Shown here piece after piece: positions 1 to 29,793 of a stretch of DNA of 64,000 nucleotides. Source of the stretch: Tubulanus polymorphus (lineage: Eukaryota > Animalia > Nemertea); the NCBI RefSeq assembly GCF_964204645.1, contig NC_134030.1, positions 22,094,210 to 22,158,209 of the forward strand, given 5' to 3'. The first letter of the stretch is position 1; each line of letters opens with the position of its first letter. The translations under genes were made by a program, and so were the position numbers. Under the pieces are notes generated by a model. The model did no database searches, was not told the DNA's origin, and saw only the letters and a list, made by a program, of their open reading frames with translations.

Positions 1-636
1 CTTAAGTTGTTAGATTTGCTATTGGACCAAAATGAGCTTAGACTGGTTTAAGCTCAACTAGACATATTGGCCACAGAACTAAAACTGTCTTAAACTGGTC
101 TTGAATACAAGCCATCATGGTGCACATTAGCCCTATTACAAAATATTTAGTTCATTGTCAATCAAAATGTTGCGATCGTAGATTATCATAATATACAGAA
201 TGCTAGAAATCTAAAAATAGTGTACACAGCTGGAGGGATCCGAGCCAGATACAGTTCTTGATTACTTGCCTACGTAGGTTCTCCATTTTCTCGTTGGGAA
301 GTATCGTTACGTTGTTCGGTGACGATAGTGATAAATTATCACATATGCCTACCGGGTATCGGTAATGAAAACTTGCGCCCGGTTCCTTGTCCCAGTTACC
401 ATTTATTGCGAACTAGAAGAAATTCTGTAAATCCGTGATTCCGAAATAGTACCGGTTTAAACTCAAGAAAATTACGCGGTATCATTGGTTCAATTATCTC
501 ATAGCATTAGTATCCATGACTATCTTTAGTGGGTGGCTCCAACAATATCCAAATCACACTGTTTCTTTATTGGGTTGATTTGTCAGGTGAATGTGCATCA
601 TGTAGACAAACAGTATTTCTGTTCTCTAATTTACAG

Positions 637-3600
637 TACCGTGTTTGGTTCCGAAACCTGAAGATGCGATTGCATTGTTGCGTTGGACAAGTGAAACCTG
701 GTATGAAAAAGGTAAGATTCTCTCACATGATTTACTGCACATATTCTCAGATATCGGTTTGATAATTTTAGGTGTTGTTTTCTCTTTGTAGATCATGAGT
801 ATTGGGTGAAAACACGTGAACAACTTCAGCCAGGTATTTATAGAATTATTAACCCTTTATTTCTATAACATATAGAATATCTCGCATGAATACAGTTCAT
901 AGTTTTAGAAATTATCCACTAATCATCTGAATGATATACAACTGATTTTGCTTCATTATCAAAACCGTAATTATCAATTTAAGTTTATGGTTAACAACGT
1001 AATTTTTGACTATTTTATCGTATGTTTTTGGTAGATGTTTAATGCAATTAACTGACAATTATTTCTATCTGTGAAGCACATTTATAATAATGGCCTCTTA
1101 TATTAACTCACTGGATACAATGGAAACACGTTTACGCAATGAAATAAACCAAATAATTTGGACCAAGAAACTTTTAGATTTTTCAGAAACTATTCCATAT
1201 TCACGTACTAAATCCTGGACTTCACTTGTAGCAAGTGAGGATCCACCAGGTGCAAGGAGGCAATTCCTTGCTATTTTTAGGGACTGAACTTTTCGTGAGA
1301 AATAAGAAAAAGCATGTGAAATCCCTGATAATGTGTTTGCCTAAGCGTTGTTGTCGTCGTTAACCGGCACTTTTTTCGGCAGTCCTCCAGTTCATGGTGT
1401 TTCATCGATCGTTCATTGATGTGTTTGGTTGAATGACTGGACTGGTTCCGGGTCACATGTACTCTGATCGTGCCTAGAAAACGTATCCACGCATCTAATT
1501 TTAAACAATTTTCTGCGGAAGAACGCCCACTAATTTGTGCACCCCTCCCTGAAATCCTGGATCTGCAGCTGTTCTGCGGCAATAGAGGATTCCCATTGAA
1601 AATCAACTATACGCGAGAAACGTTTTTAGATGTCGTCTTTTTTCATGTTTATCTGTAGCTAATATTTGTGTTGTTTGTTTAACAGTTAAAACTGAAGACT
1701 TTGAGGTCATTGAAAAGTCATTCAGTCCAGGTATATTATTCATTGTGATTTCATTTCAATAAAACAATATAAACTCACATGATTCATCGATAAATCAACT
1801 ACCTGTTTGTTAACATCGATGAATTCATTTAGAAAATTAATTTGTTGTCAATTTTTCTTTCTAGAAATTTTCAGAATAATTAAAGATGTTTACGGAACTG
1901 AGAATGATTGGGAGTTAACGAGAGATAAGGATAAACAAGGTAAGAGGAGTGAGTGGTAAGAGTAGTGAGTGGTAAGAGTAGTGAGTGGTAAGAGTAGTGA
2001 GTGGTAAGAGTAGTGACGACTCAGTTGCCGGAGGAAGAGCAGAACCGACTGATTGGTGCCCTGCATGTCTCTCTAAATATGACACTTCTGCCTCCTATCT
2101 TCATCCAGCAGTAATTCAAACTGTTTGATGCACAGTTTATTGGACTATTGAACAAATAATTTCTATAATTCATTTCAGCAATAGCTATCAGAGAATTCCT
2201 GTTTGGACAGTTATCAAGTGATCAAAGTAAGTAATCGTTTACCTATAGTTTGTTTTAAGTTTATGTACGCATGTGATGTATGTAAACATGCGCATGTGAG
2301 TTATGTGAACATGCACATGTGATTAATGTGTGCATTGACATTTGATTGATACATAGTAAGTTGTGAGTTGGGTAAACATGTTCATGTAAGTTAACATGCA
2401 CATGTGATTAGTTTACGTGTTTTAAGTTAACACAAGTTTCATCAATGTTTATATTTTCAGGTGTGTTAGATTTGGTGAAAGAAATCCTAAGTAAGTTTAC
2501 GAAACGACTCAATATTTCCTCTTCAACTCGAATCATCGATTCAAATGTGTTTGTTATTATCTGTTGACAGGAAAATACGTGAGAATAAACAATTTAAAAA
2601 CGAAACTATCAAATGAGATCGGTAAGATTTGATTGTATACAGTTATTGGTGTATGAGTTTATTGATTATTATTCTACTGTCAACACATTTTGTAAATGTA
2701 TTACAGATACATTACTGAACAAGAAGAGGTCAATAGATGGCGCTGATGTAGTTTACAATAGAGATGAAGGTACATGATTATTTAGTGTTCAAATGAAATA
2801 TTCAGCTTTGCTGATAGAAATGTAGCGAATTCTATTCAACATGGCCGCATGGCAGCCACTGAGAATAATCTATAAACCTGATAGAAGCGACCAGTTGGGA
2901 ATTTGTTATAATTCAGTGTGTTATTTCGTGAAATGGAAAGTTACTCTAAATTTCTTTGCCTAAATTCGTACCGTTTTGGTCAAATTGGATGCATCAAAAT
3001 TTGTGATGGAAATTTCATCTTAAAAATGTCAGACTAGAGCTTCAGAAATACTCAAGTTACAACAAAATAATCAAATTTACAATTGTTATTTAAGAAATAA
3101 GATGTGATATAAACTAGGGGTAATGATACAGCATGAAACAGAATTTCAATTAAACTAATTTCAAATCTATTTTTTCCGTGTTTCAGATGAAGTTCATGTT
3201 AGTTTTATGACGCAATCTAATGAAGAGAAAAAACCCCTGACAGACAAAGAGAAACAGTTCATCAGAGATGGTCAGTAAAACTATGAATTCTATCTGAGTT
3301 CCAGTTTGATGTCGGGTTCACTACACAGTTACAGAGAGTCTTAAAAAGTGTTAAAAAAACTTACTGACGAAAATTTCCAACTTTTTGAAAAAATGTCTTC
3401 CGCATTTTTCAAGATTTATACAGATGTCTGTTAGTAATGATTAGTCATGTAGTGAACAGGGTTCAGTGATTCACTGTGTCACCAATATTTAGGAGTTATC
3501 TGTATTTATGGATTTGTTCACCCAGTCCTGAGAATGGTCGGTTCGCGGAGCTCCGTATACTGCCTATACTAAAGGGGTCGCGTTAGCGATATACCACTGA

Positions 3601-6600
3601 CAAGGTTTTCAGTGAATGGATTTGCAAAATGAAATGAGTGCCAAAAGAGCAACTGCTCTGTGTGAATCACATTCAGCTATTTTTTCGCAGGCTTCAAATC
3701 CCCAGTAAACGGTTATAATGAATTTCTATATTTTCAGTTGCTTCAGCAGTTGAATCTATTGATGCTTTCTTTGCTAAAATGTCCGGTAGGTTCAATAAAT
3801 CATTTCAGTAAAAATACTGTGGAGTTTGTTGTGGAATCATTGAATAATTGATTGTGTTTATTTTTACTGTAGATGCTGAATTATGTGAACGAGGAATATT
3901 CAACATTAAACGTAGGTTTTAATTCTCATTTTATCCTCAACTGTTTATAAATACATGTGCTCTATAATCTACCGTACATGTACATGTGAGTTCTCTATAC
4001 ATGTACATGTTAGTTCTCTGTACATGTACATGTACAATACTGAAGTATTCGTAAGTTCTGTGGTTAATACTTTTTCTTTATATTTCAGCTACTGATGAAA
4101 TTGCTGGTAAGTGATAATATTCACTACGATGTTTAAACTGGTGCTAAGTCTGTTAATTGAAATATAGTTGTATCTATTTATAGATATGTTTGTAAAAGAA
4201 ACACTTCAAACAGAAGTTAAACAACAGAATGGTGAGTGTTCAGTTAATCTAGGAATCTATCAGGAAGGGGCTTACAACTATAAACTGATTACATATTAAA
4301 CATATTTTGTCTAATTACAGAAAACCTCGTCACACAAATAGAAAACCAGAAAGTAACTGATGAAACAAGGACAGGTTTGTTACATTATAATCGAAAATTT
4401 ATTCAGATTTTTTTGATCTTCTGAAAACATGTACAGTAGATACAATTTTACACCGCAATAGTAAAAACATGTAGTAGAAACTATTATTTATGGTTGGTTT
4501 TACAGAAATGGAAGTGGCCGATCGGAAGCGTTTTGTGAACAAAGATATTTGTGGTAAGACTGAAAATGTTGTTCTTTCATTATTTTTCACGATAATTACA
4601 AATCGTTTCGTTAATGAGAAATCCAAGGTACAATAAAGCCAGCTGGACCCGGTGATGTGGAACAATTGGTAACTTTGTCGAAATTCATCTGCTGTGTGGG
4701 AAATTTAAGGTTTTATAAAACCCAGATGTATTTATATGAAATTCTAGTTAGAACTGATCTACCAGATCAGTTCAAACTAGAATTTCATGAATTTCATGTG
4801 TTGTAATTTCATTAGAATAACATGAATATTGACCAGACTTGTCAATATTCATGTTATTCTATTCATGTATTCATTTGTAGAATCAGTTTTATTGGGTTCA
4901 AGTTTGCAGAAATTAGAAGAGAACAAACATTCGACAGAACTAGATAAAAGTAAGTGTAAACTTTCTTTGTCTCTAGAACTAAATTTACAGAGTATTTGAT
5001 GACCATGAATTGAAGATGAAATTTATCGATGTCATCAGATTATCAGAGGCATCTGATTCAGAGCCGAGTTTTAAGTGGTGTTAAACTAAGAATGTTGCTA
5101 GGTGACAGTTTGTATCGATATGAATAATATTCAGACTGAGTTCATCGTAGATGATTAAAATCAGTTGTGTTTAAACGCCAAAAAGTTACCCAGTATCGTC
5201 AGTACAAAATCAATCATAGTTTGAAGAAACCGTGTTTTGATTGTCATGCATGTATCAAATGGGGTGGCTCCGAAAATATCCAAATCATGTCATCATAAGA
5301 GGCTAGCCGAGGGTGATTTCTGTCAAAATGCTCCATTTTGGGAAATTATTTTTTCATTAGTTTATTTCATTGTTCAACTATATTTTTAGGTATTTATGAA
5401 ATAAGTCGAGATGTTTTAGGTAAGAACTAAATAATAGTAACAAACTATAAATACCGAGGTCTAGGGTCGAAAGCAGACGTTTTAAAAGAAATTATCAGCT
5501 GACAAATTTCAAATTACATTTTCTAGGAGTTTCTCGTTTCTTTCTGATTAGCCAGAAACTTGTTAGGTTGAATTTCATTCAGAAATTTGAATAGATTTGA
5601 ATAGAAGTCTCGATGTCACCGGAAGCGAATGCCGTGTTGTAATCATGAATTATGTTCTTTTATTCAGAAATTAAATTGAAAATCGCAGTTTTTAAATCTA
5701 TCAGAGGTAAGAGGTTTATGTATGGATTGCATCACAATCAGCAGGGTTTATTCCATCATTTTCCAAGATTCAACCTGAGCTCAATTTTTTCCTGGAACTC
5801 AATTTCTCATTTTTTTCATGATGATACATAGGCCTATTTACAAATATTTCTTAAAATTGCTCAATTTGTTTTCTGAGAACTCAATTTCAGTTCTGATGAA
5901 ATTTTCCTAGTAATTTATCTTGACGAATCACTTTTAGAATTGTACGCTGGACGAGCTGAAAGATTTCAGAAAGAACTCAAAGAGAAACTGAAACAAGAGG
6001 AAAATAAAGAGAGAAAAAACGAGGAGGAATTGAACAGAATAATTCACAGTTCAGTTTGTCAGGCGTTTAAATATATCACTGATATGAATGAAAGTAAATA
6101 TCGATTTTATATCTCAAAGTATAATGCACTTAACATGTCGCATATTATATGTAAATGAATGCACATGTCACATGTTCATGTAAATGAATGCACGTCATGT
6201 AACATGGTTCAAACATCTTTGATACATTTCAGAAACTCTGGTGGATAGTAATGTTGTACGATATGGAGGTTTGTATATAATTTACATGGTTCAATCACAA
6301 ACCAGTTTTTAGCCCACTTGGGACTTTAGTCCCAGCGGACTATTGCGTTCACTTTTCGTCCGTCGTCCGTCCGTAGACGGAATCCAGTTATTTTGGGATG
6401 TTTTGAAGACGCTTCAAGGTAACGTCTTGATATTTGGGTTACACATGTATCTACCCTAGACACATCTTCAGCCCAAAAACTGGCCCTGTCAGATTCAAGA
6501 TGGCCGGCTGGCAGCCATTGTTGTTCGCCAAAATTAGCACTTTTTACTTTTTGAGGGTAATTTTGAAGACGCTTTGATCAATTACATTGATCTTTCGGAT

Positions 6601-9600
6601 ATATGTGAATCCCCCGAGGGCCCATCAGCAAAAATTGGGTCGATCGGACTCAAGATGGCCGTCCTATGACCTTTTTTGTGCCCAAAATGTCAATTTTGGC
6701 CGGAATTCTGGGTCCTTTAGCTTCCTACTTGTTTGCCATTTCTCATTGCAATTTGTGATGGGTATTCTTTGGAAAGGGATGTTTTATACCTGAGATAGGT
6801 ATTTTTGATCTGCCAATTATGACGCAATTGGCGGCCATCTTGGTGTCATCAGTACTCATTCGTAGGTGGGAAAAAGTTTTTCCACATTAAATTGATACCT
6901 TAGCATATTGTGTTACTATATTCAATTGGAAAGTTGTAGCCCATAACGTGTTCTATGATTTTGGTGAGTTTCAAGGTCATTGGTTTTTGTATGTGGCCAC
7001 CAGGGGGCGTTGAATAATACAATAACTTAGTATCGCTATATTTTATTTGTACCGATGCATATTTTGTTACCACAATCAATTGGAAAGTTGTAGCTTATGA
7101 CATCATCTATGATTGTGGTGAGTTTTAAGGACATTATATATATAGTCACCAGGGGGCGTTGAATAGTAGAATAACTTAGTGTTTCCTTATAAGATTGGTA
7201 CCTAGGCATATTTTGTTACCATGACCAATCGCAAAGTTGTAGTTCATGACATGTTCTATGATTGTGGTGAGTTTCAAGGTCATTGGGTTTTGCATATGGT
7301 CACCAGGGGGCGTTGAATAGTAGAATAGCTTAGTATTTCCTTATTATATTGGTGCCTAGACATATTTTGTTAGCATGATCAATTGCAAAGTTGTAGTTCA
7401 TGACATAGATCATTGGGTTTTGCATATGGTCACCCGGGGCCGTTGAATAGTAGTCAGAATAACTTAGTATTTCCATATTAAATTGGTAACGAGGCATATT
7501 TTGTTTTCACAATCAATTACAAAATCGTAGATGCTGACATGTTCTATGATTGTGGTGGGTTTTAAGGTCATTGGTTTTTGTATATGGTCACCAGGGGGCG
7601 TTGAATATTGAAATTGTTAGATTGTTGAGCATTTGACACCACTTCCCAAGTAGGCATGGTGTCCCTGGACCCCTAGTTATCATGAATAATCTGTTTGATT
7701 TTCTATCTATTTATATTCCAGTGAGTCCAGAAGAGATAAGTGAGTTCTGATTGATATTTATAAATATTCTCAGTACAGTAGACTGCGCACTTGTCTTTGA
7801 TTTCATGTTGTAATTCGTCATATTTACCTTTTTATAAGTTGCAGTGATTTTCTATATTGATAGATTCTAAACTTCGTGAATTAGCCGATAAAGAGTTTAA
7901 AGACAGAACAGGTACTGTACATATTACAAAGTGTGAAGACTCTTGAATGGATTGTTTTGATATCGGTTACCCTAGATCCGAGTGTCGTACATAGAAAGCA
8001 AGCTAACCAGTAGACCATAGACGTATAAACTAGTCTAGTTTATACGTCCATGAGTAGACCAATAGAACTAGTCCACTGGTTAATGTTTATACAGCTTGTC
8101 CTATATGCGGAACGCTGTGACCTTTTTTGAGCCCAAAAAGTTCATTTTCGCCCTGCATTCCGAGACCTGTAGCTTCCGAATGGTTTGCCATTTTTCATTG
8201 AAATTCGTTATGGATATTTTTAGAAGGGCTCTTAAACATATCAGATGGGCTGACGTTGAATAATGGAATTTAGTAATGTTTTAAATCTTATTGATGTTTA
8301 TAATCAATGTTTATTACAGTCGGTAGATTTAAGGGAATAAAGACACCTGAAGAGATAGTGACTGTAACGCTGAATATACCGACACAACTCCGCACTGGTA
8401 AGTGACTACACTGAAACTGTATGTTGGAATTGGAATTCAATACAGTAAACTTAAAATTAGTCGAGAATCAGGAAAATCGGTTTATCACAAACTTAAGGAA
8501 TCTTTATTTGAATTTAATCTAATTTGTAGACTTGTATTCAGCTGGACGAGATCCAGTTATTCTGCCGGATCGAGCAGGTATTGTATAAGTCCGTAAAAAA
8601 CTTAAGATAACCAGTTTAATTCCATTCCATAATCATGCCGTTATCAAACGCCAACATATTTCAGGGAATAAATCCCGCAAATCTAAATTCAGTGGAAATA
8701 CCATTCTTTATAATGCCTTGTACTTCATCGGTCCCAACTGTTGCATCATGAAGGACTTTCACTGTGAACAAAATTTGAGTTTTTTAAGAGCATTAGCCTG
8801 AAATATTCTGCAACTGATCATTGTCCCCGAAAGGACGATTAATTCTTCTAAGTTCTTGTAACGAATCGTTAAACTGCTCGTTATTAAAACCAGAAATCGC
8901 TCTTCCGTCATATACCTAATTGTTTGGTTAAGGCCCTGAAAATGGGGTTCTAACCATGGTTTACTGGTATTTTTAATGTCAAAATGCAAACTTAAAGCAA
9001 CAACGGTTTTATAATGAAACCACACTCATTGAATGCTGTGTCTATGTTTGCTGTTTTTATGTGAATTTCAGTGGAATATTTCAAGGATGAATTCATTAGC
9101 GCAATACAATCTGATGAATCATTGAAAACTGCTACTCAAACTGCTTTAGATAACGGTAAGTTACATCTACAGTAAACTACATTTACATCTACAGTAAACT
9201 ACATTTACATCTACAGTAAACTACATTTGCATCTACAGTAAACTACATTTAATACATCTACATCTACAATCAACAATTAGATACATTTATTCACTAAGAT
9301 TGTCAATCATAGAAATTTGTTTGTGGTTTTTTAGAATCAAGTAAAATCAACGAATTGTTGAGGAAAGAAAAGTCGAATGGTAAAATTGTTTGATAAAATG
9401 CGGATAATTTGTTTGTTTTCACGAACCGAAAAATAATTCAAACGTTTTTCTTCTATTTCTTAGTTAATAGAATTTATGGTGAAGTGAAAAAGAGAATAGA
9501 ATCAATGTCTACAGGTTTGTATTTTAATGATTTTCTATCAATTCTTGCATTTAAATGTCGGATATATTTCCTCGTGTTGAGGCTTCTTTTCATAAAGCAT

Positions 9601-11318
9601 GTTATAATATATCATATTTTTCATAAACATATCATATCATATCATATACCACTATCATATACAATGTCATCAAGTACATATATAAAATACGTATATCACA
9701 TATCATATCACGCCATACCACATCATTTATGCTTGTAAAATGTGATTTTGAAGGTGATGAGTTTTGTTTTACTTTTTATCACGAATTGATGCATTGCTTA
9801 ATTTACGTTCTACTTCTATTTGTGATTTCAGAGGAATTAAATGAACAGGGAATCGTAGTTTATAGAAGTGAGTAAAAGTCAATTTGTCTGATTTGAATTC
9901 TAATCTGTTCATCAATTCCATAGTTTTCCTGTTCCATAGTTACCCTGATCCCATAAACTCCTCACAAGAGACTCCCAACACTAGAATCATAACCCCTCAG
10001 TTTTTTTAAATTCAGATCTAAATCAAATTAAGTAAGAATTTTATAGTAAAAGTGAACTGTATGAATTTATCTGTTTAGATCTAATTAATGTATATTTATT
10101 AGTTATTGTTGTTGTTCTGTTTTTCAGTAAAAGATGAAACAGCGAGTAAGTACTGATGACAACTTCCATGTTAAAATTTAGATAAAAATATATATTTGTC
10201 ATCTCCTGTTTTGAATAGTAGTGGTTCTTATATAGCGCTAAATCCAGTGAAACCGTTTTACAGATGATGAAAATACTTCCTTCAAAAGGAAGGATTGTGA
10301 AAGGAGAACATTTTGGTGTTTATAGTATTATCCAAAACCTATGATATGAGTAATATGCATAAGTAGTTTTTAGTTTGTGGTTGCGGTTACATGAACTTTT
10401 GAACTTTATTGTACCATGTGTTTTGTACCACGTGTTCCTGGTTTATCTTTGTATGTGTGAATCCTTACTTATCAATAGAACGTCATATAGTAAACACGTA
10501 GTCTCAATATTTCTTCTTCCACGCCGTTTTGTGTTGCTTACAAGCTCTTTTACAACACATGTTTCTCTCTCCCTGCAGTAATCTATTGTGTTTATTCTGT
10601 TACAGTGAGTAACATCAAACCAATTATTGCAGACAGAATCCAAACGGAATTTAAAGGTGAATACATTGTGTTTACTGTTAGGTGTTTCAATTAACAAATT
10701 TAATCGGTACCGAGAGTAAGAATGGTGGTCGACAGGTCCCGAGTTAAGGGTGAAGGTCGACTGTATTTTGTTGGAGGATATTTGACGCTGTAGCAGCATA
10801 AATAGTTTACATCATCAGACGATATTTTAGTAGTTTCTAATGAGCATTGTATAATTACAGATTCACTAGTGACTGTTTTAGAAGAGAAATGTCAAAAGGC
10901 TATCAGTTTGTGGCCATCAAAACACTGGGAATACGATATATCTCGCGCGAGTAAGTTCATTGTGAAATCAGTTTGTGATTTATAATAGAATTCTATTGTA
11001 TAAAAACTTGTCTATTGTTTATTACATATAGTGTCTGTACTCAGTGAATTTACCAGTAGAACTTTAAACACAAACACAGGTTATTGGAAACAAGTCAAAG
11101 AATGTTTCGGTAAATAATAAATTCTTGTTTCACTGCTGATTCTTTTTTGATGATCTGATTTGTAAGGATGACCAATAATTGTTTGTTCTGTTTGAATAGG
11201 AGATGAAATTAACAGTGAAACAAATACAACTGAACTGACAGAAATAGGTGAATATCAAATTAACATATTACATATTATTTCAAGATTAACAAAAATTATT
11301 TTGAAAATTATTTATATA

Positions 11319-11385
<67 letters not shown>

Positions 11386-17300: not shown

Positions 17301-20300
17301 ATTTATGCTTGTAAAATGTAATTTTGAAGTTGATTAACTTCATTTTATTTTTCATCATGGAACGATTCATTGCTGAATTTACGTTCTATTTCTATTTGTG
17401 ATTTCAGAGAAATTGAAGGAACGAGGAATCGTAGCTTATAGAAGTGAGTAGAATGCGTGTTTGATTTATTCATCAATTTACACAGTTTTGAGTTACCCTA
17501 AACCCCTTAACACTAACCCCTAAACTCCTAACCCTAGACTTCTAAGCTGTCACTATTGAGATGAACAAAACTGAAAAAGAAATAAAAAATTAGGATATTT
17601 TCAAACTCTTGACAAAAAACATTGACCAATATTACATACAATTTAGAAAATAAAGTATAGAATTAAAGCACATTGAATAATCATATAATAAATAATAATG
17701 ATAATTAAAAAAAATAATAGAATTAAACATCAGCAGAAATAAATAATCATGTAAAAAATAAATCTATAAAAGTAATTTTTGAAAGATGATAAAAGCGTTT
17801 AGTCGCAATGATATTCTACAAATGAATAAGATTTAAAGAAATTTAGATTTAATTGAAAAGAAGTGAAAAGTGAACTGTATGAATTGACCTGTTTATATCT
17901 ACTCTATGTTTATATATGAATTATTGTTGTTTTCTGTTTTTCAGTAAAAGATGAAATAGCGAGTAAGTACTGATAACAACTTACACATTAGAGTCTAGAT
18001 AAATAGATATTTGTCATGTCCTGTTTTGAATAATAGCGATTCTTATATTGCGCTAAAACCAGTAAACAGTTCAGAGTACTTGAAAAGCTGCACGAAATGC
18101 TGCCTTAGAAAGGAAACATTTCAGGGGCTTCCCACATTCATCAATGGATGAAATTGCCCGTGGAGGCTTCGGGGCGGATCTATCCAAGGTTTCTGTGAGT
18201 ACCGCTCAACTGTGGAAGGGTAAGCCCAATCATAACCCAATTACGGTACTCCCTCAGAAAATCGTGAAGTTTTGTTGGAAATATTTATTAAAGAAATAAA
18301 AAGTTTACCATTTTCCATTATTCAAATTAACCATTTCTATTACTTCTACCAGAATATCAGCCTGGAATATAACATACATGTCTGTACAACTCAAACCCTG
18401 ATCAAATTCAAATCAACTCATCGATAATAACTCACTTGCCAGGGGTAATTTATTCCTGTTAAAACGAGATTTTCACGAGGAACTTGAAAAAATGGTTCTT
18501 CTACAATCGTGAGTACCGCTCAAAGCGGTAGTTGCGGTCGGCTGGAGCCACCCCTGGGCGGCTTGTTCCACAAATTTGGGGCACTACTCGGCGGAATATG
18601 TAGTATTTGACTCGCAGTGGCTTTGAACATGGATAGAAGCAGAAACGTGAGAGTAACAGATTTTCCTTGATCTTCAATATCGCGGTTTATTTATAAATCA
18701 GTACAATCAATATTCATTCTCTGGTTTATCGACTTGATTTGTAGATGTGAAAGAAGAACATGTTTTACTCTCCCTGTAGTAATCTATTGTGTTTATTCTT
18801 TTTCAGTGTTTCATATCAAACCAATTATTGCAAACAGAATCCCACAGTTTAAAGGTGAATATATTGTGTTGACTGTTAGGTGTTTAGTATACTAGCAAAG
18901 AACCGGCCGTCATGAACGGGTTTTATCGTGATTGAGTTTGAGTTGATTATTTTGCTTCTCGTGTGGAATACACAGTTATTTCGCGTAAGGTCGACTGTAT
19001 TTTGTAGGAGGATATTGTGACGCTATAGCAACATAAATAGTTTACATCAGTTGACATCATGATAGTTTCTAAATTTAACTTTGCACCTCATAGGTACATT
19101 ATAACATGTATAATTACAGATTCACTAGAGACTGTTTTAGAAGAGAAATGTAAAAAGGCTTCTGGTTTGTCAACAAACAGCAGTATAAACCCTACCAAGT
19201 GGACGCTATCCAAACAATGGGTTTACGATATATCTCGCGCGAGTCAGTTCACAGTGAAATCAGTTTGTGATTTATAATAGAATTCTATTGTATAAAAACT
19301 TGTCTATTGTTTATTACATATAGTATCTGTACTCAGTGAATTTACCAGTAGAACTTTAAAGACAAACACAGGTTATTGGAAACAAGTCAAAGAATGTTTC
19401 GGTAAATAATAGATTCTTGTTTCGTTTCTGAATTTTTTAATGGTCTGACTTTCAGGTTTTGAATAATAATTATTTGTTCTGTTTGAATAGGAGATAAAAT
19501 TGACGGTGAAACAAATACAACTGAACTGACAAAAATAGGTGAATATTTTTAAAAATTCAGACAAAAATATAGCGTTGAATTCATTGAAGATGAAATTCAT
19601 CAATTTAATCGGATCTTCAGAGGCGTCTGTTTTGATTCAGGTCCATGTTTTAAGTGTGAAACTTAAAGTGTTTGATAGCCGCCACTGTTTGTTCACACAT
19701 TTTGTACCGATGTGAAAATGTCTTTATTTATTTGTTTATAGTTGATGAATGTTTGAGAGAATGCACTAAAACAATGAATGATAAATGGATTACTGGTGAG
19801 TACCCCTCATGAGTGAGTACCTTATTCGCTAACGCCACGCAACACAATTTTCATCGCAAATCCTCCCGTAAATATTATTCACTAAAATCAGCGCAAATAT
19901 TTTCCTCACAAATTGCTCAATTTTTCCCTCAAATCTGCGTGCACAACTAAGAGGCACCCCTTAACTCTCATTTACCGCGCAAATAATACTTTCTTGGCTT
20001 TTGAAAGTTAAATAACGTAAATAATTGATATTTTTCAAGGTGCGGTCTGATGGACCAGTACCTTACCAAATTTTTCTGGGGCTCAACTTGGATTCATTGT
20101 TAATTATAGTTAAGACCCTTTTCACCAATATATTTGCCCTATGGTGGCCGGCATCCAGCGTTATATCACGTACACAGAATTATTTTTTCAAGAAAAGACT
20201 TTTAAGAATGAATTAAATATTAGTTTATTCTCGATGCCAAAATCATTAAATCGATGATAAGTTAAGAAAGGTACAGCGTCCATTCCCGATAATGAATAAT

Positions 20301-23300
20301 GAATATTGGAATATTATGTTAATTTAAAGGTAATAAATATTCTTTTGATAATAATCAAATACAAATTGTTTTCAATGAGGCCACATCAAGAATCCAGATA
20401 TGGTGACGGTGAATAAGATATTGATGCAAATATCAATTTGCAATGAGTTTTTACTATGAATACCTTTTATGATTGGACTAGTTCCCGTTGCGTGAAAAAT
20501 TGCCAATCATATCTTGCGATGAGTTTATCTCAAACTGATTTTCATCGCAAATCGTCTCGCAACGCAAATCATCCACGCAAACTTGCGTAAAGTTAGTGAA
20601 TAATGTCCCCGGTACCTGAATTGTGTGAAGACATTTAAATGATGTGATTCATTGATGAAGTTGAAACCAGCAGTAAACTAAACCAGGTTGAATGACTAGT
20701 TTTCTGTGAGCTTGAATTTCATGTATTGATATTTTTAGACGATTTCAAGATCCGCAACATGATTGTAGAGACTAAGATAGGTAAATATTAGTAGAATAGT
20801 CAGAACTGATGACGTGGAGAAATATAGTAAGTTTATATAAAACCCACTATATACAAAGTCTTTAGAAGATTAAAAAAGCGAAATTTATCTATCAAAAATT
20901 AAAATCAAAGGACTCAACTTTTCGAATTTTCACTAGACATCAACTCAGGTCTGACGTTGGTCTCTAGCGACAGATCGAAACGTTTTGTCCTTTGATTTTA
21001 ATTTTTGGTAGATATCGTATAGCTCTGAATTATGAATTTATTTACACTCCAACCATTCCCATGGTGTATGAAGAAAAAACAGTATTTGCATAATTACAAA
21101 AAAAACCTAGAAAATAATATTATTTTAAAACATAACAAATGTTATTTACAACATACTATTTACACACACTACCGGAGCGATCTATATACATCTACCGGTA
21201 GACCTAATTTTATAGATTTAGCCTGGTTTTTTTTAAATATCAAGGTTCCTAAATGTATTTGAATTTAAGTAGTTTTCACGGAATTCGGTTAGTAAGTTAA
21301 AGTAAAAAATAAAATGTAGTTCTTCTAATAAAACGTTTTAGGAGGGGGGCCTAATATATCGGTTCTTGGTAAATAAAGATTTGAAAATTCATTCACAGGT
21401 AAAAGATAAGACCCAATCCTGAATTGAAATAAACGTCATCAAGCTGATTAATATAGTTATCAAATTTTTATCTAAATTAAATTGTAACTATTCTGTTATT
21501 TGTATTGTAGAAGAGATTGTGAATAAGGTCAAACACGAATATTTTCAAACTCGCGAATTTAGAAGTAAGTTTGCAATAAAATCAGAACCTGTTTTAACAA
21601 CCAGAACTCAAATATCTGTATGTATTGTATTATTATTTATAGGATCAGTTGAGACTGCAGTGAATGAAGCTATCCAGAATTCAGGTATTTATTAAATATT
21701 CTTCATAAGTTCGCATTCTGTGATTGAATTGAGTTCAGTTTGGCTGAATGTGTATTTTTTCAAATGTATTTTTACAGAAAAATCACAAGCCGGCAAAACA
21801 CCAAACTATGAGGCTGCAGGTTTGTAAAAACTCTAATTTCTGTAAATGAATTTGACCTGATGTGGTTGCTACACAGGACCGAATTTCATAGATTAGGGGG
21901 CAAAATATTCCCCTGGACCCAGTTTTATAGACTGGTATTATCTTTAACCCGGGAGTTAACTTAATTGAAATTGAATCAAGTTAGCCTCCAGGTTAAAGAT
22001 AATACCAGTCTATAAAACCGACCCCTTGGCCCTGGAAACTTTTTGAAAATTGTCAGTAGTTAACATAGTTTCTCAATGTTGCTATGGTGGTTGTCACTCT
22101 TGTTGAGGATTTTCCCCAAGAGGATCATCCATTTATTACGTCTGCAACAAATTCAGAAAAAGCCTCGAGTATGCTGATAATAGTTAGATCGAGTCCATTA
22201 TGTATAAAAAGGGTGGTAGAAAATGTAGTCACGTGATAAAATTCATCCTGAACAGAATTGAATTTTTTTAAGGTGCGTACAATACGCATTATTATTTACC
22301 CCTCCCCCTTTTGTACACACAAGTATGCAATTTAATAAGACCCCCTTAATTGTACAATTTGATTTTTGAGTTTAACCCCCTCCCTACCCAAAATGCGTAC
22401 CTAATTAGTGGATGACTCCTTAAAAGGTAACTTTGAACCCGCCCTATGAAACAAGGCCCACGATTATGACCACAAAGATGAGGTAATTTTCAGTTGCTTT
22501 CCCTTCAGAATTTTATTCTATTATTTCAGTGCAGTGGATAGCTGCTGAAATGAAAGGTAAATTGACTGATAATAAATACTCAATTTCGTGATGAGTTTGT
22601 GTTGATGTTTACAGAATCATTTCTAATTTCAGATTTTACGGTTAAACCATCTGAAACATCATATGGTATGTAATATAATTGTTATATACAGTTGATTATA
22701 GGTTGATTATTGATTATACGGTCGCTGTCATCGTTTTTACTGTCACTGTTCACTCAACACGAACATTTTTCAGAGAACAAATTTGTAAAATCAAACTCAA
22801 ATTCAATGAAATGAAAATACCATTTATAAATCGCCAAAATTCATTACGATGTCATATTTTTCATTGGTCCCAAAAGTAGCTTAAAGGACTTTGACTATAT
22901 GATAGTGGCTGATTTTAATTCTCGCGTGAGAAAACCAAAAAAGGGCCACTGTGAAAATTTTTTTATCGTTGCTCTACCCGTACAGAAGAATTTTTTAGTA
23001 TGGCCCGATTCAGCCACCATACATAAAGGACTTGGGTATATGTTTTGTGGGTGCCTCATCAGTCAGCCAACTGAGCAGGAAGTCTAGTAACAATTCACTA
23101 AAAATCATGATGTGTTTTCAGAGCGTAATGAATTTGCTAGACTTGCACGAGCAACAGGTAATGAACAAATTATGTGTGTTGAAATTGATGTTATCGGTTT
23201 TTATAATGTTTTATAATGTTATACGTAATTTGATTTCTATTTCAGTAACGAGAAAATCAAGAGAGTTGATGGATGAGATACGTGCTATAACAGATAAAGG

Positions 23301-26300
23301 TAATCAATATTGACTTCTATAAACATTTTACTGACTCAATTCCATATTCATGAATTCATGTTTCCACATTTATATATAACATGTCTTTTGGTTCCCAAAC
23401 CGGGAAATCAGGAATTTCAAAATTATATTTCCAGGTTGGAAATATATGCGTTAGAAATTCTCCTAATTCTGGAAATATTTTTGAAATTCATTTTGCGCTT
23501 CAACTTTCTTTGGCAATCTTTCTAGAAAATCACTTTCATCAACCAATCGACAGTAAAATGTTCTGACGTCACTGTAGTGTGTGATGTTATCTGCTTAATT
23601 TCTATCTGGAAAATGAATAATCACCCATGAAATACTCGGGTTTATTGACTTCATAAAATTATGAGAACTATCCTTAATTCTGTTTTGAGTTCGATCACAA
23701 ACTTGTTTGGTCTTTATTTCATTACATTTGAAGTTAATCTTATTCATGTGAATATTGCTGATTATAATTTGTATGCATCAAATTTTCAAGAATATTTTAT
23801 TTTATTTTCAGACGAATTAAAAAGCTCGGTTTCCTGGTATAGTTCATACATAGTTTTCATTTTTTTCAGGCGAATTAAAAAAGCTCGGTTTCCTGGTAGA
23901 GGAGTCGAGTAAGTAAATTATACAGTCGTCACTTTCTGAATTAAACCATATGAACGAGGTTAAACTACGTAGTTTTGACGTTAAATGGTATGAGATAAAA
24001 CAAATCGACGAAATTGAGATGAAATTAAGTTTCGTTTTCTTCTGGTTTTTGAGAAATCCGAAGTATATCATTAAACCGGTTTCATCCGGTTCACTGGGGA
24101 AACCGGTGAAATTCATCTGGTTTATGAGAAATCACGATTTAAAATCGCATTCAATGAGATACTAGTTGATTGTTTAATAAATAGTCATATCATATCACAT
24201 ATCATATCACGTATCATATCAGCAGGTATATACACTTGTATTACATGTCATCACACACAGATTATTTATTTTTCATCATGGATTGATTTATTGCTGAATT
24301 CACATATTCTTTCTATTTGTGATTTCAGAGAAATTAAAGGAACGAGGAATCGTAGCTTATAGAAGTGAGTAGAACGCGTGTTTGATTTATTCGTCAATTT
24401 ACACAGTTTTGAGTTACCCTAAACTCCTTAACACTAACCCCTAAACTCCTAACCCCTAAACTCCTAACACTAGACTCCTAACACTAAACTCCTAACACTA
24501 AACTCCTAACGCTAGACCCCTAACACTAGACTCCTAACACTAGACCCCTAACACTAGACTCCTAACACTAGACCCCTAACACTAGACTCCTGACACTAGA
24601 CTCCTAACACTAGACTCCTAACACTAGACTCCTAACACTAGACCCCTAACACTAGACTCCTAACACTAGACCCCTAACACTAGACTCCTGACACTAAACC
24701 TCTAACACTAGACTCCTAGCACTAGACCCCTAACCCTTAAACTCCTAACACTAAACTCCTAACACTAGACTCCTAACGCTAAACTCCTAACCCCTAAACT
24801 CCTAACACAAACTCCTAACCCCTAAACTCCTAACACAAACTCCTAACCCCTAAACTCCTAACCCCTAAACTCCTAACCCCTAAACTCCTAACCCCTAAAC
24901 TCCTTACACAAACTCCTAACCCCTAAACTCCTTACACAAACTCCTAACCCCTAAACTCCTTAAAGTACTTTACATCATAAAATGATCTCAAAGCTTAATA
25001 CATTCAAATATTACAATCTTAAAAATAAGTTACATAGATATAATACATTGAACAATGATACAATAAATCGAATACTGTAATCATACTAAATGTATTCTAC
25101 AAATAAATAAGAATTTTCCAGATTTAGATTTTAATCAGAAGTAAGAATTATATGGTTAAAGTGAACTGTATAAGTTTACCTGTTTAGATCTACCGGTACT
25201 CAATGTTTATATATCCGGTATTTGAATTATTGTTGTTTTTTGTTTTTCAGTAAAAGACGAAACAGCGTGTAAGTACTGATAACAACTGATTCGTTAAACT
25301 CTACATAAATAGATAACACAATATGATATATCCTATATTGAATAGAAGCGGTTCTTATATAGCTCTGAATTCTGTGAAGCTGGTCATGAAATACTTCCTT
25401 TAGGATTGGAAAGAATAACATGTTTCTCTCTCCCTGCAGTAATCTATTGTGTTTATTCTGTTTCAGTGAAACACATCAAACAAATTATTGCAAACAGAAT
25501 CCCGGGATTTAAAGGTGAATACATTGTATTGACTGTTAAGGGTATTAGTTAACAAGTTAAACCAGTACAGAGTAAGGGTGAAGGTCGACTGTATTTTGTA
25601 GGAGGATATTTGGCGCTGTTGCAGCATAAATAGTTTAAAACATCGGTCAATGTTGTAATAGTTTCTATTTTCTAAGTTGTTTTGCTCCTCATTAGGTACA
25701 TTGTAACATGTATAATTACAGATTCACTAGTGACTGTTTTAGAAGAGAAATGTAAAGACGCTCGCAGTATGTGGTCATCAAAACACTGGGCATATGATAT
25801 ATCTCGCGCGAGTAAGTTCACAGTGAAATCAGTTTGTGATTTATAATAGAATTCTATTGTATAAAAACTTGTCTATTGTTTATTACATATAGTGTCTGAA
25901 CTCAGTGAATTTACCAGTAGAACTTTAAAGACAGGCACAGGTTATTGGAAACAAGTCAAAGAATGTTACGGTAAATAATAAATTTTTGTTTCACTGAACG
26001 TTTTATTAAATGATCTGATTTTTGTGTTTTGAATAATAATTGTTTGTTCTGTTTGAATAGGAGATGAAATTAACGGTGAAACAAATACAACTGAACTGAC
26101 AGAAATAGGTGAATATAAACAAATTCAGATAAACAGAAATATAGTATTGAATTCATTGAAGATGAAATTCATCAATTTAATCAGATCTTCACAGAGACCT
26201 GTTTTGATGCAGAGCAATTTGAACTAATTTTAAACTAAGAGCGCTTGAAACCCTTTGGTCTCAGTTTGAATCAATGTGAAAATTTATTGTTTATAGTTAC

Positions 26301-28434
26301 TGAATGTTTGGGTGAATGCAGTAAAACAATGCGTGATAAATGGAACACTGGTGAGTACCCCTCATGAGTACTTCTCATGAGTACCCCTCATGAGTACCTA
26401 TCATCAGTACCTCTCTTGAGTACCTTATTCAAATGACCACCGAGCGTCTTGAGTACTGTTAAGTACAAGACTTGAATACAAATTGTAATTCGAGCAGGAA
26501 AGTTGATTGAGTACCATTTATTAACTGTCAGGATATGTAATTAGTGTGGTGAGTACAATGAGTACCAAATACAGACACTCAACTGAGTACCCGGCCCCGG
26601 TACCTGAATTGTGTAAAGACATTTAAATGATGTAATTCATTGATCAAGTTGAAACAAACTGCAAACTGAACCAGTTTTTCTGTGAACTAATGTTTCATGA
26701 TTTGATATTTTTAGACTATTTTAAAAACCGAAAGATGATTGTAGAGACAGGTAAATATTGTGTAGCTCTGATATTCAGCCCAGTACTGCCCCCTGGTGAC
26801 TTTATGAGATGTAACTATTCTGTTATTTGTATTTTAGACGAGATTGTTGATGAGATAAAACGCGAATATTTTCAGACTCCCGAATTTAGAAGTAGGTTTC
26901 CAGTAAAATCAGAACCTGTTTCAACAACCAGAACTCAAATATTAATATCTGTATGTATTGTATTATTATTTATAGGATCAGTTGAGACTGCAGTGAATGA
27001 AGCTATCAAGAATTCAGGTAATTAAATATTCTTCATAAATATGAATTCTGTGTTTGAATATTTCCAATTAGTCGAATTCAGATTTTGAAATGACTTCAGA
27101 TGTTTAGTGAAGGTGTATTTTTTTCAATGTAAACTTATATTTTACAGAAAAATCACAAGCCGGCAAAAAACCGAACTATGAAGTTGCAGGTTTGTAACAT
27201 TTCTGGTAACGAATTTGACCTGATGAATTTCACAGATTAGAAAACAAATTCCCTGGGAAAAAACAAATTCCATTTTAAATATGTCAACTATTTCGTTCCA
27301 TGGCTTCCTGTCGTTACTAGGGTGGTAGTCACCCTTGTTGATGATTTACCCCTAAGGGTAACTTTGAATCGCGGTCTATGAAATAAGGAAGATTATGTAA
27401 TATTCTGTTCAGAATTATATCTTATCATTATTTCAGTGAAATGGATAGCTGATGAAATGAAAGGTAAATTGACTGATAATAAATACTCAGTTTTATGATG
27501 AGTTTATGTTGATGTTTACAGAATCATTTCTAATTTCAGATTTCACGGTTAAACCATCTGAAATTTATGGTATGTGATATTGTTTTATATCTATATTTGT
27601 TGTATGGGTGGCTCATCTGTCAGACAACTGGGCGGGAAGTCGAGTAACAATTCACTAAAAATCCTGATGTTTTTTTTTTCAGAGCTTAATGAATTTGCTA
27701 AAATTGCACAACCAAAAGGTAATGAATAGATTATGTGTGTTAAAACTGATGTTATCGATTTTGATAATGTTTTATAATGTTATACGTAATTTAATTTATG
27801 TTTCAGTGATGAGGAAATCAAGAGAGTTGATGGATAAGATACGTGCTATAACAGATAAAGGTAATCAATATTGACTTCTATAAACATTTTACTGACTCAA
27901 TATTTCCATATTCATGGATTCATGTTTCCACATATATATATATATATAACGTGTCTTATGGTCCCCAAACCGGGAAATCAGGAATTGCAAAATAATATTT
28001 CATCATGGCTCAAAATATTTGCGTTGTAAGTTGATAGATTTTCCTCTCATTCTGGAAGTATTTTGAAAATTTATTTTGCGCTTCAACTTTCTTCACCGAT
28101 CTTTCTTGAAAATCACCTACATCAGCCAATCACCGGTAAAATGTTGATGTCACTGTAGTGTGTGATGATAGCTGCTAAATCTGGAAAATGAAAATCAACA
28201 CCCATGAAATACTCGGGTTTATTGACTTCATGTAATTGTGAGAACTATCCATAAATTCTGTTTTGAGTTCGATCACAAACTTGTTTGGTCTTTACTTCTT
28301 TAGATTTGAGTTTGATCTGATGTTATATGTGAATGATACAACTGTTTATAGTTTGAATGCATCAGTTCATATATTGTTTTCATTTCATTTTTCAGGCGAA
28401 TTAAAAAAGCTCGGTTTCCTGGTAGAGGAGTCGA
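637..28434 (+). CDS. Multi-exon gene of at least 74 short symmetric phase-1 exons; uncharacterised Glu/Lys-rich repetitive protein (~1,270 aa in window; 5' end probably upstream, 3' end unresolved)
   Basis: Exons read as polypyrimidine-AG...GT, each 3n long and open in the phase-1 frame: 637-711, 792-833, 1686-1730, 1865-1939, 2179-2226, 2461-2490, 2571-2621, 2707-2769, 3187-3270, 3738-3785, 3873-3911, 4089-4106, 4184-4231, 4321-4374, 4506-4553, 4881-4949, 5390-5419, 5668-5706, 5938-6093, 6233-6268; block A 7722-7739, 7864-7911, 8320-8397, 8530-8577, 9072-9155, 9335-9379, 9464-9514; B 9832-9867, 10128-10145, 10606-10656, 10861-10950, 11032-11109, 11200-11247, 11419-11472, 13553-13588; A' 13824-13835, 14273-14329 (or 14320), 14421-14549, 14772-14819, 15269-15352, 16473-16517, 16682-16732; B' 17408-17443, 17945-17962, 18807-18854, 19120-19242, 19324-19401, 19491-19538, 19742-19795, 20739-20780; C 21511-21564, 21643-21684, 21778-21819, 22530-22556, 22633-22665, 23122-23157, 23246-23299, 23870-23908; B'' 24329-24364, 25251-25268, 25467-25514, 25722-25811, 25893-25970, 26061-26108, 26297-26350, 26715-26750; C' 26838-26891, 26976-27017, 27148-27189, 27437-27463, 27540-27569, 27683-27718, 27807-27860, 28396-28434. 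Sum 3,813 nt. Translation begins PCLVPKPEDAIALLRWTSETWYEK-DHEYWVKTREQLQP-VKTEDFEVIEKSFSP. All length differences between paralogous exons are multiples of 3. A possible further exon lies at 28870-28914. Confidence 0.85.
1940..2015 (+). repeat. 16-bp minisatellite (gtaagagtagtgagtg) starting at a splice donor
   Basis: About 4.7 tandem copies directly after exon 1865-1939. Confidence 0.85.
6309..7678 (+). mobile_element. Non-autonomous Helentron/Helitron2-associated element (HINE/DINE-1-like) with internal ~150-bp tandem repeats
   Basis: Inserted in a T-run; 5' subterminal repeat gcccacttggga (6312) inverted at the 3' end as tcccaagtaggc (7644); 5' hairpin gggactttagtccc; (gtcc)n microsatellite ~6356-6373; about 5 tandem units ~6890-7620; 3' hairpin then ctagtt. 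This layout matches the described HINE organisation. Confidence 0.75.
9161..9250 (+). repeat. 22-bp minisatellite (acatctacagtaaactacattt), ~4 copies
   Basis: Visible tandem copies; short paralogue of the 15358-16410 array. Confidence 0.9.
11323..11380. repeat. (TA)n microsatellite
   Basis: Pure TA dinucleotide run. Confidence 0.97.
11494..13183. mobile_element. Non-autonomous TIR DNA transposon, IS3EU-like termini, with a duplicated right end
   Basis: Left end tatggtgactgataagggccatgaaaatatttcc is inverted at 13150-13183 (...catggtccttatcagccaccata) and again ending at 12850. Flanks ccctca/ccctcg form a 6-bp TSD with one mismatch. Absent from the paralogous intron after 26350. TAY..RTA ends with a 6-bp TSD fit IS3EU as I recall its definition. 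Confidence 0.7.
11872..12129. mobile_element. Nested 258-bp palindromic MITE (IS3EU-like ends)
   Basis: TIR tacggaagcccctaggtgacata / tatgtcacctaggggcttccgta; perfect 6-bp TSD cgctag (11866-11871 and 12130-12135); interior of ttcgacttaataagtcgaa palindromic units. Confidence 0.85.
13616..13750. mobile_element. Short MITE (gggccggttccata...tatggagccggcc)
   Basis: Imperfect terminal inverted repeats; similar ends at 36540-36648. Confidence 0.55.
15358..16410 (+). repeat. 22-bp minisatellite array (~47 copies, with 24-bp variants)
   Basis: Tandem acatctacagtaaactacattt directly after the donor of exon 15269-15352. Confidence 0.97.
16881..17225. mobile_element. Foldback-like insertion
   Basis: C/T-rich left arm (ccccttttcccattttgcccc) mirrors a G/A-rich right arm (ggggctaaatgggaaagggg); flanked by cttgtat on both sides; absent at the paralogous site near 24240. 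Confidence 0.6.
19818..20609. mobile_element. Probable degraded TIR element inserted in an intron
   Basis: ttattcgctaac...acgcaa at left is inverted as ttgcgt...gttagtgaataa at right; sequence absent from the paralogous intron 26351-26714. Confidence 0.5.
21876..22459. mobile_element. Nested MITE remnants including a ~110-bp near-perfect palindrome at ~21914-22025
   Basis: gttttatagactggtattatctttaacc ... ggttaaagataataccagtctataaaac inverted pair; inserts missing from the paralogous intron 27190-27436. Confidence 0.6.
24414..24961 (+). repeat. 14-15-bp minisatellite (taacactagactcc / taacccctaaactcc)
   Basis: Tandem array; only about 3 units at the paralogous position 17492-17545. Confidence 0.95.
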
Positions 28435-29222
28435 GTAAGTAAATTATACAGTCATCACTTTCTGATTTAGACTAGGATCGAGAGATGAAATAGTTTGACA
28501 TACAATAAATCGACAAAATTAAGATGAAATTAAGTTTCATTTTCTCTGGTTTGTGGGAGATCCGAAGTATATGATTAAACCGGTTTAATCCGGATCACTG
28601 GGGAAACCGGTGAAATTCATCTGGTTTATGAGAAATCACGATTTAAAATCGCATTCAATGAGATACTAGTTGATTGTTTAATAAATAGTCATAAAACTGA
28701 ACGGAATCTCAGAATTCGGATTTAACTGATCCTGATTAGGTTAATCCGGTATTCATGGTTCTAATCTCTACTGAACAGTTTAAGACATTAATGAACAACA
28801 ATGTTCAATAATATGATATCAAAACTCCTCACTTAGATGAATAAAAAGAGTCTGAATTGTTTCCTTTAGAAGATATTCATTCAACGTTTGAATTATATCC
28901 TTTAATAGCTAAAAGTAATCATCATAAATACTAGTATTATAACAAAATTATTAGGTTTAATGCTATACAGAACAAGTCACGAAATAAGTTACGAACTGTA
29001 TTCAGATGTAATACAAACTAGGGGTAATATACAGCATTAAAACGGTTACAAGTTAAACATATTAAGGGAACTTAAAGAATACAACAGTGAATATAAGTTA
29101 ATGATTGGATATCTAAAGCAGAACAAACTCTAAGGTGTTTGTAATTGTATTTGATGTTTGGTTTATATTGTATTTATTAATAGGGGCTTAGTAGAAGTCT
29201 AAGTAATGAAACTGCTGGTGAA

Positions 29223-29793
29223 GGTAGATCGGGTACTGGCCGACCAGTGAGTGGTGATGGTAGATCGGGTACTGGCCGACCAGTGAGTGGTAGATCGGGT
29301 ACTGGCCGACCAGTGAGTGGTGATGGTAGATCGGGTACTGGCCGACCAGTGAGTGGTGATGGTAGATCGGGTACTGGCCGACCAGTGAGTGGTAGATCGG
29401 GTACTGGCCGACCAGTGAGTGGTGATGGTAGATCGGGTACTGGCCGACCAGTGAGTGGTGATGGTAGATCGGGTACTGGCCGACCAGTGAGTGGTGATGG
29501 TAGATCGGGTACTGGCCGACCAGTGAGTGGTGATGGTAGATCGGGTACTGGCCGACCAATGAGTGGTGATGGTAGATCGGGTACTGACCGACCAGTGAGT
29601 GGTGATGGTAGATCGGGTACTGGCCGACCAATGAGTGGTGATGGTAGATCGGGTACTGGCCGACCAATGAGTGGTGATGGTAGATCGGGTACTGACCGAC
29701 CAGTGAGTGGTGATGGTAGATCGGGTACTGACCGACCAGTGAGTGGTGATGGTAGATCGGGTACTGGCCGACCAGTGAGTGGTGGTGGTAGAT
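29223..29793 (+). repeat. 39-bp minisatellite (with 33-bp variants), ~15 copies
   Basis: ggtagatcgggtactggccgaccagtgagtggtgat-type units; explains the repetitive ORFs on both strands. Confidence 0.95.

Follow-up and report, generated by a model that had tools for sequence, protein, structure and literature searches.

Tandem clusters in which related ectodomains are coupled to different cytoplasmic tails, with tyrosine-based motifs, are familiar from the vertebrate LILR, KIR, SIRP and CD300 receptors. The Hydractinia Alr family, in the part of its description used here (10.1101/2022.03.04.482883), comprises clustered single-pass IgSF proteins in which each domain has its own exon; its genes have duplicated recently and shuffled exons, some isoforms skip the TM, and some members have ITAM or ITIM motifs. 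The GRC and PTC2 clusters of Biomphalaria encode hyperdiverse single-pass membrane proteins tied to parasite resistance (PMC7494358), and the sea cucumber protein AjNLRC4 joins extracellular Ig and TM regions to an intracellular NACHT domain, binding microbes via its Ig domains (PMC8699970). The schistosome micro-exon genes (MEGs) form a multigene family of a different kind: they are secreted, have 10-20 exons of mostly 15 nt, vary by splicing and evolve fast (10.1101/2023.06.21.545858).

We analysed a window of 64,000 nucleotides (C6:22,094,210-22,158,209) from the nemertean Tubulanus polymorphus, in which scoring of splice sites without regard to phase recovered 74 AG/GT-bounded exons of 12-156 nt between positions 637 and 28434 (+). 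The first-pass annotation took the gene to be unannotated; it is already in RefSeq as LOC141907883 (XP_074653742-4), labelled 'uncharacterized'. In its isoform X1 (P0058; 1,752 aa) the peptides of the 74 exons are all present and in the right order, starting at residue 481, and the RefSeq protein P0044 matches 73 of the 74 exactly. Residues 1-480 of P0058 are the translation of six upstream exons (Table 1): an extension upstream, proposed in search of a signal-peptide exon, found that exon together with the Ig and TM exons. With the exception of the first, these exons are 3n and phase 1, and they continue in frame into the exon at 637-711. The Pfam matches of the Ig exons fall short of curated cut-offs in the window gene and exceed the cut-off in its relative P0001. 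Hydropathy yields two hydrophobic segments only, the signal and the TM helix, with none in the tail, and juxtamembrane cysteines stand beside the TM helix. The protein accordingly combines the signal peptide, Ig-like domains and single TM helix of a type I IgSF receptor. Since the array directly follows the TM exon and there is one TM helix, it is predicted to encode the cytoplasmic tail, of 1,271 residues, of a single-pass Ig-type receptor. Of the earlier suggestion of a secreted or surface protein, the surface part is thus upheld, while MEG-like secretion does not agree with an array that follows a TM exon. At L001:5779-6066 we also observed that the initial 42 nt of the Ig1 exon occur four times in tandem; each copy has AG/GT ends and is 3n and phase 1, and the copies, which are absent from RefSeq X1, are possibly new micro-exons arising by local duplication.

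Table 1. Exons of the window gene and of its upstream partner. L001 is the 10 kb preceding the window (plus); a window position equals the L001 position minus 10000.
Feature	Position	Strand	Basis or remark
Signal peptide exon with furin-like RxKR site	L001 5027-5141	+	translation, P0058
Ig1 exon	L001 6107-6391	+	Ig_2, E 6e-4 (under curated cut-off)
Ig2 exon	L001 6814-7149	+	Ig-like
Ig3 exon	L001 7957-8292	+	C2-set_2, E 0.03 (under curated cut-off)
Fourth beta-rich domain exon	L001 8600-8869	+	zero Pfam matches
TM exon, 96 nt	L001 9601-9696	+	hydropathy
End of intron following TM exon	window 1-636	+	
Tail exons 1-20, first half	637-711, 792-833, 1686-1730, 1865-1939, 2179-2226, 2461-2490, 2571-2621, 2707-2769, 3187-3270, 3738-3785	+	P0058 residues 481-846 (exons 1-20)
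Tail exons 1-20, second half	3873-3911, 4089-4106, 4184-4231, 4321-4374, 4506-4553, 4881-4949, 5390-5419, 5668-5706, 5938-6093, 6233-6268	+	
Repeat block A, exons 21-35	7722-7739, 7864-7911, 8320-8397, 8530-8577, 9072-9155, 9335-9379, 9464-9514, 9832-9867, 10128-10145, 10606-10656, 10861-10950, 11032-11109, 11200-11247, 11419-11472, 13553-13588	+	
Repeat block B, exons 36-50	13824-13835, 14273-14329, 14421-14549, 14772-14819, 15269-15352, 16473-16517, 16682-16732, 17408-17443, 17945-17962, 18807-18854, 19120-19242, 19324-19401, 19491-19538, 19742-19795, 20739-20780	+	
End module, first copy, exons 51-58	21511-21564, 21643-21684, 21778-21819, 22530-22556, 22633-22665, 23122-23157, 23246-23299, 23870-23908	+	
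Partial third repeat, exons 59-66	24329-24364, 25251-25268, 25467-25514, 25722-25811, 25893-25970, 26061-26108, 26297-26350, 26715-26750	+	
End module, second copy, exons 67-74	26838-26891, 26976-27017, 27148-27189, 27437-27463, 27540-27569, 27683-27718, 27807-27860, 28396-28434	+	
Terminal exon	29184-29807	+	phase 1 gives Arg-Ala-stop (stop 29189-29191), same as RefSeq
Partner gene	L002:8545-8644, 9168-9488; L001:210-1888 (upstream of window)		signal peptide, one Ig, short stalk exons, TM, tyrosine tail

By analogy, the cluster would work like Hydractinia Alr, the snail PTC2 and GRC clusters and the membrane NLR AjNLRC4, and not as a MEG. Tandem related ectodomains with different tails and tyrosine motifs recall the LILR, KIR, SIRP and CD300 clusters, which differ in their independent origin and have neither NLR fusions nor a giant helical tail. 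With Alr it shares clustered single-pass IgSF proteins, a domain-per-exon organization, recent duplication, exon shuffling and TM-skipping isoforms; unlike Alr, it has a 1,200-residue helical tail built from dozens of small exons and a NACHT fusion, neither being described for Alr in the part of that paper drawn on here (10.1101/2022.03.04.482883). A profile of the Ig3 exon, searched over 1.84 billion proteins, retrieved RefSeq proteins of T. polymorphus first; among the matches named out of 32, one distant match was hemicentin and none gave a link to Alr. The relatives with a NACHT domain combine extracellular Ig, TM and intracellular NACHT, as does AjNLRC4, but have one TM and a C-terminal LRR-like region where that protein has two TM and no LRR (PMC8699970); the window gene itself, again unlike AjNLRC4, is without NACHT. 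Like GRC and PTC2 (PMC7494358), the locus is a lophotrochozoan cluster of hyperdiverse single-pass membrane proteins; the protein searches run gave no sequence match to either, and the likeness seen is one of cluster type. Long runs of short, mostly symmetric exons, a multigene family and fast evolution are shared with the MEGs (10.1101/2023.06.21.545858). However, in place of secreted products of 10-20 exons without a membrane anchor, we find a TM exon ahead of 74 exons (11 of them ≤30 nt) that form the cytoplasmic tail of a 1,752-aa receptor varying mainly between loci. Short symmetric exons account for 74 of the 81 exons of the gene and are on average longer than those of MEGs.

All 74 array exons are 3n and phase 1, 49 being ≤51 nt, and with exon 46 taken as 19120-19242 they join into a single open frame of 3,813 nt with zero stops. 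Their last base is G in 54, A in 18, and C and T in one each, the T belonging to 25251-25268. A phase-blind scan restricted to strong acceptor/donor pairs at strict thresholds returned 45 pairs, 43 of them 3n and every one of these 43 open in the phase-1 frame (p ~1e-18), while the controls, namely the opposite strand and the window from 31 to 64 kb, gave few candidates, about one-third of which were 3n at looser thresholds. When the exons were projected onto upstream paralog units, AG/GT was kept in 247 of 251; 17 of 18 length changes were 3n and the 18th is a partial self-match inside exon 38, so that all 17 true changes are 3n, and with that self-match set aside none of the other 246 projected exons has a stop. 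The length changes of short introns were 3n in just 6 of 27 cases. The excess of 3n pairs in the strict scan and the splice-site conservation in paralogs show that the array is no artefact of choosing exons by eye, and thereby exclude the bias toward 3n calls feared at the outset.

Only 4 of the 2,701 possible pairs of array exons would create a stop at the skip junction. The donor -1 position ordinarily prefers G or A, and the scarcity of junction stops follows mostly from this preference. A special adaptation against junction stops was considered and ruled out: the donor consensus suffices, and the TM exon ends in T, so that 23 of its 74 possible joins to array exons would give a stop. The essential description in the first-pass annotation therefore stands after rescoring and comparison with paralogs and RefSeq, including the run of 74 consecutive phase-1 3n exons with its stop-free frame, their last bases, the near-universal retention of frame on skipping and the conserved splice sites of duplicated copies.

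The gene extends beyond the array as first called, P0058 ending two residues past exon 74. In another frame the terminal exon holds a 207-codon Gly/Ser/Arg repeat; the paralogous terminal exon at -39977 has one G fewer at its start, and P0051 reads the Gly/Ser/Arg sequence through. A T-x-V C-terminus (PDZ-type, recognised by eye) is found in 8 RefSeq paralogs and in the adjacent L002 unit; the window copy does not have it because of one extra G at the start of the last exon relative to the paralog, which may be a true variant or a homopolymer error.

The internal organization of the tail points to growth by duplication: besides repeat blocks A and B (about 66-71% amino-acid identity) there is an incomplete third repeat, the end module is present twice, and exons 11-12 are old relatives of exons 28-29. 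Exons 59-74 constitute an additional duplication absent from five upstream units. Near-invariant Trp, Cys and Tyr columns and a helical amphipathic pattern are common to 25 repeat copies. At window 23812-23838, just 5' of the full exon, the beginning of exon 58 occurs a second time as a partial copy that has a strong acceptor of its own.

The proposed search for paralogues was productive. Exon 19 has 18 copies genome-wide, 16 of them on C6, and with one unit without exons 12-50 this makes about 19 tail-bearing loci; the genome also holds 24 Ig exons of the Ig3 type and about 40 more distant ones. In the 200 kb read, six units of about 26-43 kb are arranged head-to-tail, the window gene being the last, and in each a single-Ig gene with a TM and a tyrosine-rich tail precedes the Ig-TM-micro-exon gene. 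We rejected a reading of the second Ig-TM unit as part of one long gene, since the genes are set apart by stop-bearing terminal exons and by a new signal peptide. The partner gene is present in every unit (RefSeq LOC141907918-like, 374 aa); its Ig shares 53% identity with Ig3, and there are 12 tyrosines in its tail, forming about ten tyrosine motifs that include four YxxM and one YSYATV. The two genes of a unit are thus linked, related in their ectodomains and unlike in their tails, tyrosine motifs being found in one of them, as in paired immune receptors. Further along the window, three long ORFs at 37833-44623 (+) with CUB, LDL-receptor class A, LRR and rhodopsin-type 7TM matches are a candidate GRL101-like LDLa-LRR GPCR, intron-poor or interrupted, and the ORFs at 51425-55927 and 56785-58941 (-), 1,500 and 718 codons long, contain repeats and gave zero Pfam matches.

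The tails of the six units comprise about 43, 59, 59, 59, 22 and 74 exons, the differences arising by gain or loss of whole blocks, always in frame. A paralog 106 kb upstream (C6:21,987,979-21,994,026 and on) matches the window gene at every base (100% identity) in exons 3-34, their flanks and short introns (window 1686-11472) and differs in exons 1-2 and past exon 34; this identity may reflect very recent conversion or duplication, or an effect of assembly. Because the internal exons, Ig1 through the end of the tail array, are without exception symmetric and phase 1, recombination in any intron can add, delete or swap exons in frame, and this has taken place repeatedly. The diversification that can be demonstrated is genomic, by duplication, loss and swapping of exon blocks among the roughly 19 loci.

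The copies are young (dS 0.01-0.1). Counting (NG86) gave a dN/dS of 1.66 over few sites for Ig1, about 0.6 for Ig3 with domain 4, and 0.36-0.47 for the Ig and tail of the partner, which is more conserved than the micro-exon gene. For the tail, exons 1-20 compared pair by pair gave 0.78-1.10, the internal repeats 0.83 (bootstrap 0.59-1.25) and the pooled data 1.06-1.23. These values are rough, since the pairs are non-independent and gene conversion is evident. Paralog divergence is 0.06-0.09 in exons against 0.05-0.14 in short introns, so that exons are not faster than introns. As a rough reading, frame and splice sites are strictly kept, whereas the tail sequence appears to be under weak constraint or mixed selection, and a dN/dS near 1 fits relaxed constraint as much as mixed selection.

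Outside T. polymorphus no homolog of the tail was found among 5.8 billion proteins; Pfam and PDB sequences gave zero matches, the ESM Atlas no usable one, and C3 exoenzyme and AvrB (E 0.05-0.8) were dismissed as chance. Two AlphaFold models, built on RefSeq protein sequence, are almost all helical at low confidence (pLDDT 39.8 and 48.8), and fold searches from them returned generic helical matches only (Foldseek E at least 0.33, best VIA Z 6.6, Atlas TM at most 0.32). The models thus tentatively indicate a mostly alpha-helical, charged tail, in line with the earlier description of a charged, amphipathic-helix-like product of no recognisable family, and the fold search proposed at that stage likewise ended without a known family. 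No catalytic motif is evident in the tail. Exon junctions fall inside predicted structure elements of a low-confidence model in 19 of 36 cases against 55% expected, with no preference for loops. Among PDB sequences the Ig exons are closest to IgLON and RPTP Ig domains, at a non-significant E of 0.3-0.9.

Several relatives connect this receptor type to NACHT-LRR (NLR) proteins. P0001, P0006 and P0078 couple an ectodomain of the window-gene type to a TM, a short Cys-rich linker, a NACHT domain and an LRR-like region. P0055 has Ig domains, a TM, a shortened micro-exon tail and then NACHT-LRR (NACHT E 3e-16), and P0056 has part of the tail ahead of NACHT-LRR (NACHT E 8e-17); in both, NLRC4_HD2 is weak and the LRR weakly supported by Pfam. 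The genome agrees with this at C6:22.26 Mb, C9:0.32 Mb and C19, where a NACHT frame, open for >900 codons, lies 3' of tail exons in the same orientation. The tail thus precedes NACHT-LRR in at least one RefSeq model and probably at three loci, and the models together with genomic order show cytoplasmic modules being exchanged with NLRs. The window gene has no NACHT domain, P0058 ending after exon 74, and its close paralogs P0003 and P0004 gave no NACHT match. The NACHT exon (P0055, about residue 1494) and tail-only terminal exons (P0034, about residue 1510) start alike, with V-T-R or V-T-Q/H; these three residues hint at a common acceptor segment where NACHT and terminal ends were exchanged. 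The soluble relatives P0075-P0085 (C8, C9 and small contigs) have (I/V)Q(I/M)G repeats before the same NACHT-LRR; by eye these look like RHIMs, and Pfam gave no RHIM call for them at E 0.01. Effector domains of NLRs sit N-terminal to NACHT, and the tail fills this slot, where it might act as an effector domain.

RefSeq lists 1-4 protein isoforms per locus, the longest holding every exon, and they differ mostly by single-exon skips or tandem-acceptor shifts. Skipped elements include exon 3, 18-nt, 36-nt and 45-nt exons, two adjacent exons, the TM exon and whole Ig exons, the TM exon at three loci (P0063, P0067, P0069) and Ig exons at one. The TM-skipping isoforms would carry ectodomain and tail in a secreted form. 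At NCBI an alternative model normally requires aligned transcripts, and ab initio prediction has difficulty in placing 12- and 18-nt exons exactly; the RefSeq structure of the array is therefore probably transcript-supported. Some paralog models are without exon 3, and the models may in part be ab initio or affected by cross-mapping between paralogs. Sequencing runs over window 560-6400 are uninformative on splicing: the DNA-like X1-X3 span introns with zero exon-exon joints, and X4, RNA by guess, touches repeats alone. The isoforms show occasional cassette use and not a combinatorial repertoire, so that the combinatorial splicing proposed in the first-pass annotation is not supported so far.

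An immune or self-recognition role is what we infer as likely for these proteins, and our best reading, held with moderate confidence, is a lineage-specific family of such receptors diversified mainly by genomic exon shuffling. In this germline-encoded kit for immune or self/non-self recognition, variable distal Ig domains would bind ligand and clustering would bring the tails together, each tail acting as a scaffold for protein binding at the position occupied in NLRs by the effector domain. The scaffold role is the default for a tail with no homolog, Pfam or PDB match or confident model. Most tail-only paralogs would be tethered through the C-terminal T-x-V, the tyrosine-motif gene would be the paired partner of the micro-exon receptor, and exon skipping would add a modest second layer of diversity. 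Possible, if rather doubtful, is that a membrane-anchored NLR system has in this tail a new, variable module for recognition or effector function inside the cell. Its dozens of interchangeable phase-1 exons would be reshuffled between loci, with skipping as a further source of variation, so that one ectodomain would be wired to many outputs or baits. That combinatorial splicing instead diversifies the intracellular tail, each locus producing very many tail isoforms by cassette skipping, as in MEGs or Dscam, and so tuning signalling per cell, seems unlikely: almost all skips are in frame and stop-free and single-exon skips occur at many loci, but the isoforms per locus are few and the longest has the full exon set, the junctions show no loop preference in the low-confidence model, and the uniform phase 1, which extends to the Ig and TM exons, follows from descent through exon duplication.

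A tandem cluster with variable distal Ig domains and a conserved T-x-V end, together with weak, non-significant best matches to IgLON and RPTP Ig, would also suit receptors for adhesion or neural self-avoidance, in which homophilic Ig domains and PDZ-anchored tails confer cell identity, as in clustered protocadherins or Dscam, with no immune role. We regard this as distinctly improbable, given the fusion of ectodomain and tail to NACHT-LRR, partner tyrosine motifs of the immune-receptor type and the confinement of the young copies to a single species. Quite improbable, too, is a nearly neutral spacer, in which selection would keep only the frame and an approximate distance from the TM to the terminal motif or NACHT while the sequence drifts; a dN/dS of about 1, the tolerance of 40-exon deletions and block duplications and the want of a confident fold speak for it, but drift would more likely yield low complexity, as in the terminal exon, than the amphipathic helical pattern and near-invariant Trp/Cys/Tyr columns of the 25 repeat copies. 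Gamete-recognition proteins typically show rapid repeat-based evolution and concerted copying, both of which are seen here, and a fast-evolving family of that kind is conceivable in a marine spawner; it is a long shot, however, as the repeated variable part is intracellular and the NLR fusions point to immunity.

Nemertean immunity has barely been described, and by title or abstract none of the papers retrieved on it concerns this receptor family. One genome here shows a kit of all-phase-1 exons that joins one Ig ectodomain to different cytoplasmic ends, including Ig-TM-NACHT-LRR. Most variable immune receptors vary outward, whereas here much of the variation is predicted to be intracellular. 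It lies in a large tail that has no known relative and in which amino-acid and silent changes accumulate at about equal rates, with exact preservation of the frame. The family thus offers a tractable case for the use of small symmetric exons in genomic shuffling versus splicing diversity, and for domain exchange between surface receptors and NLRs.
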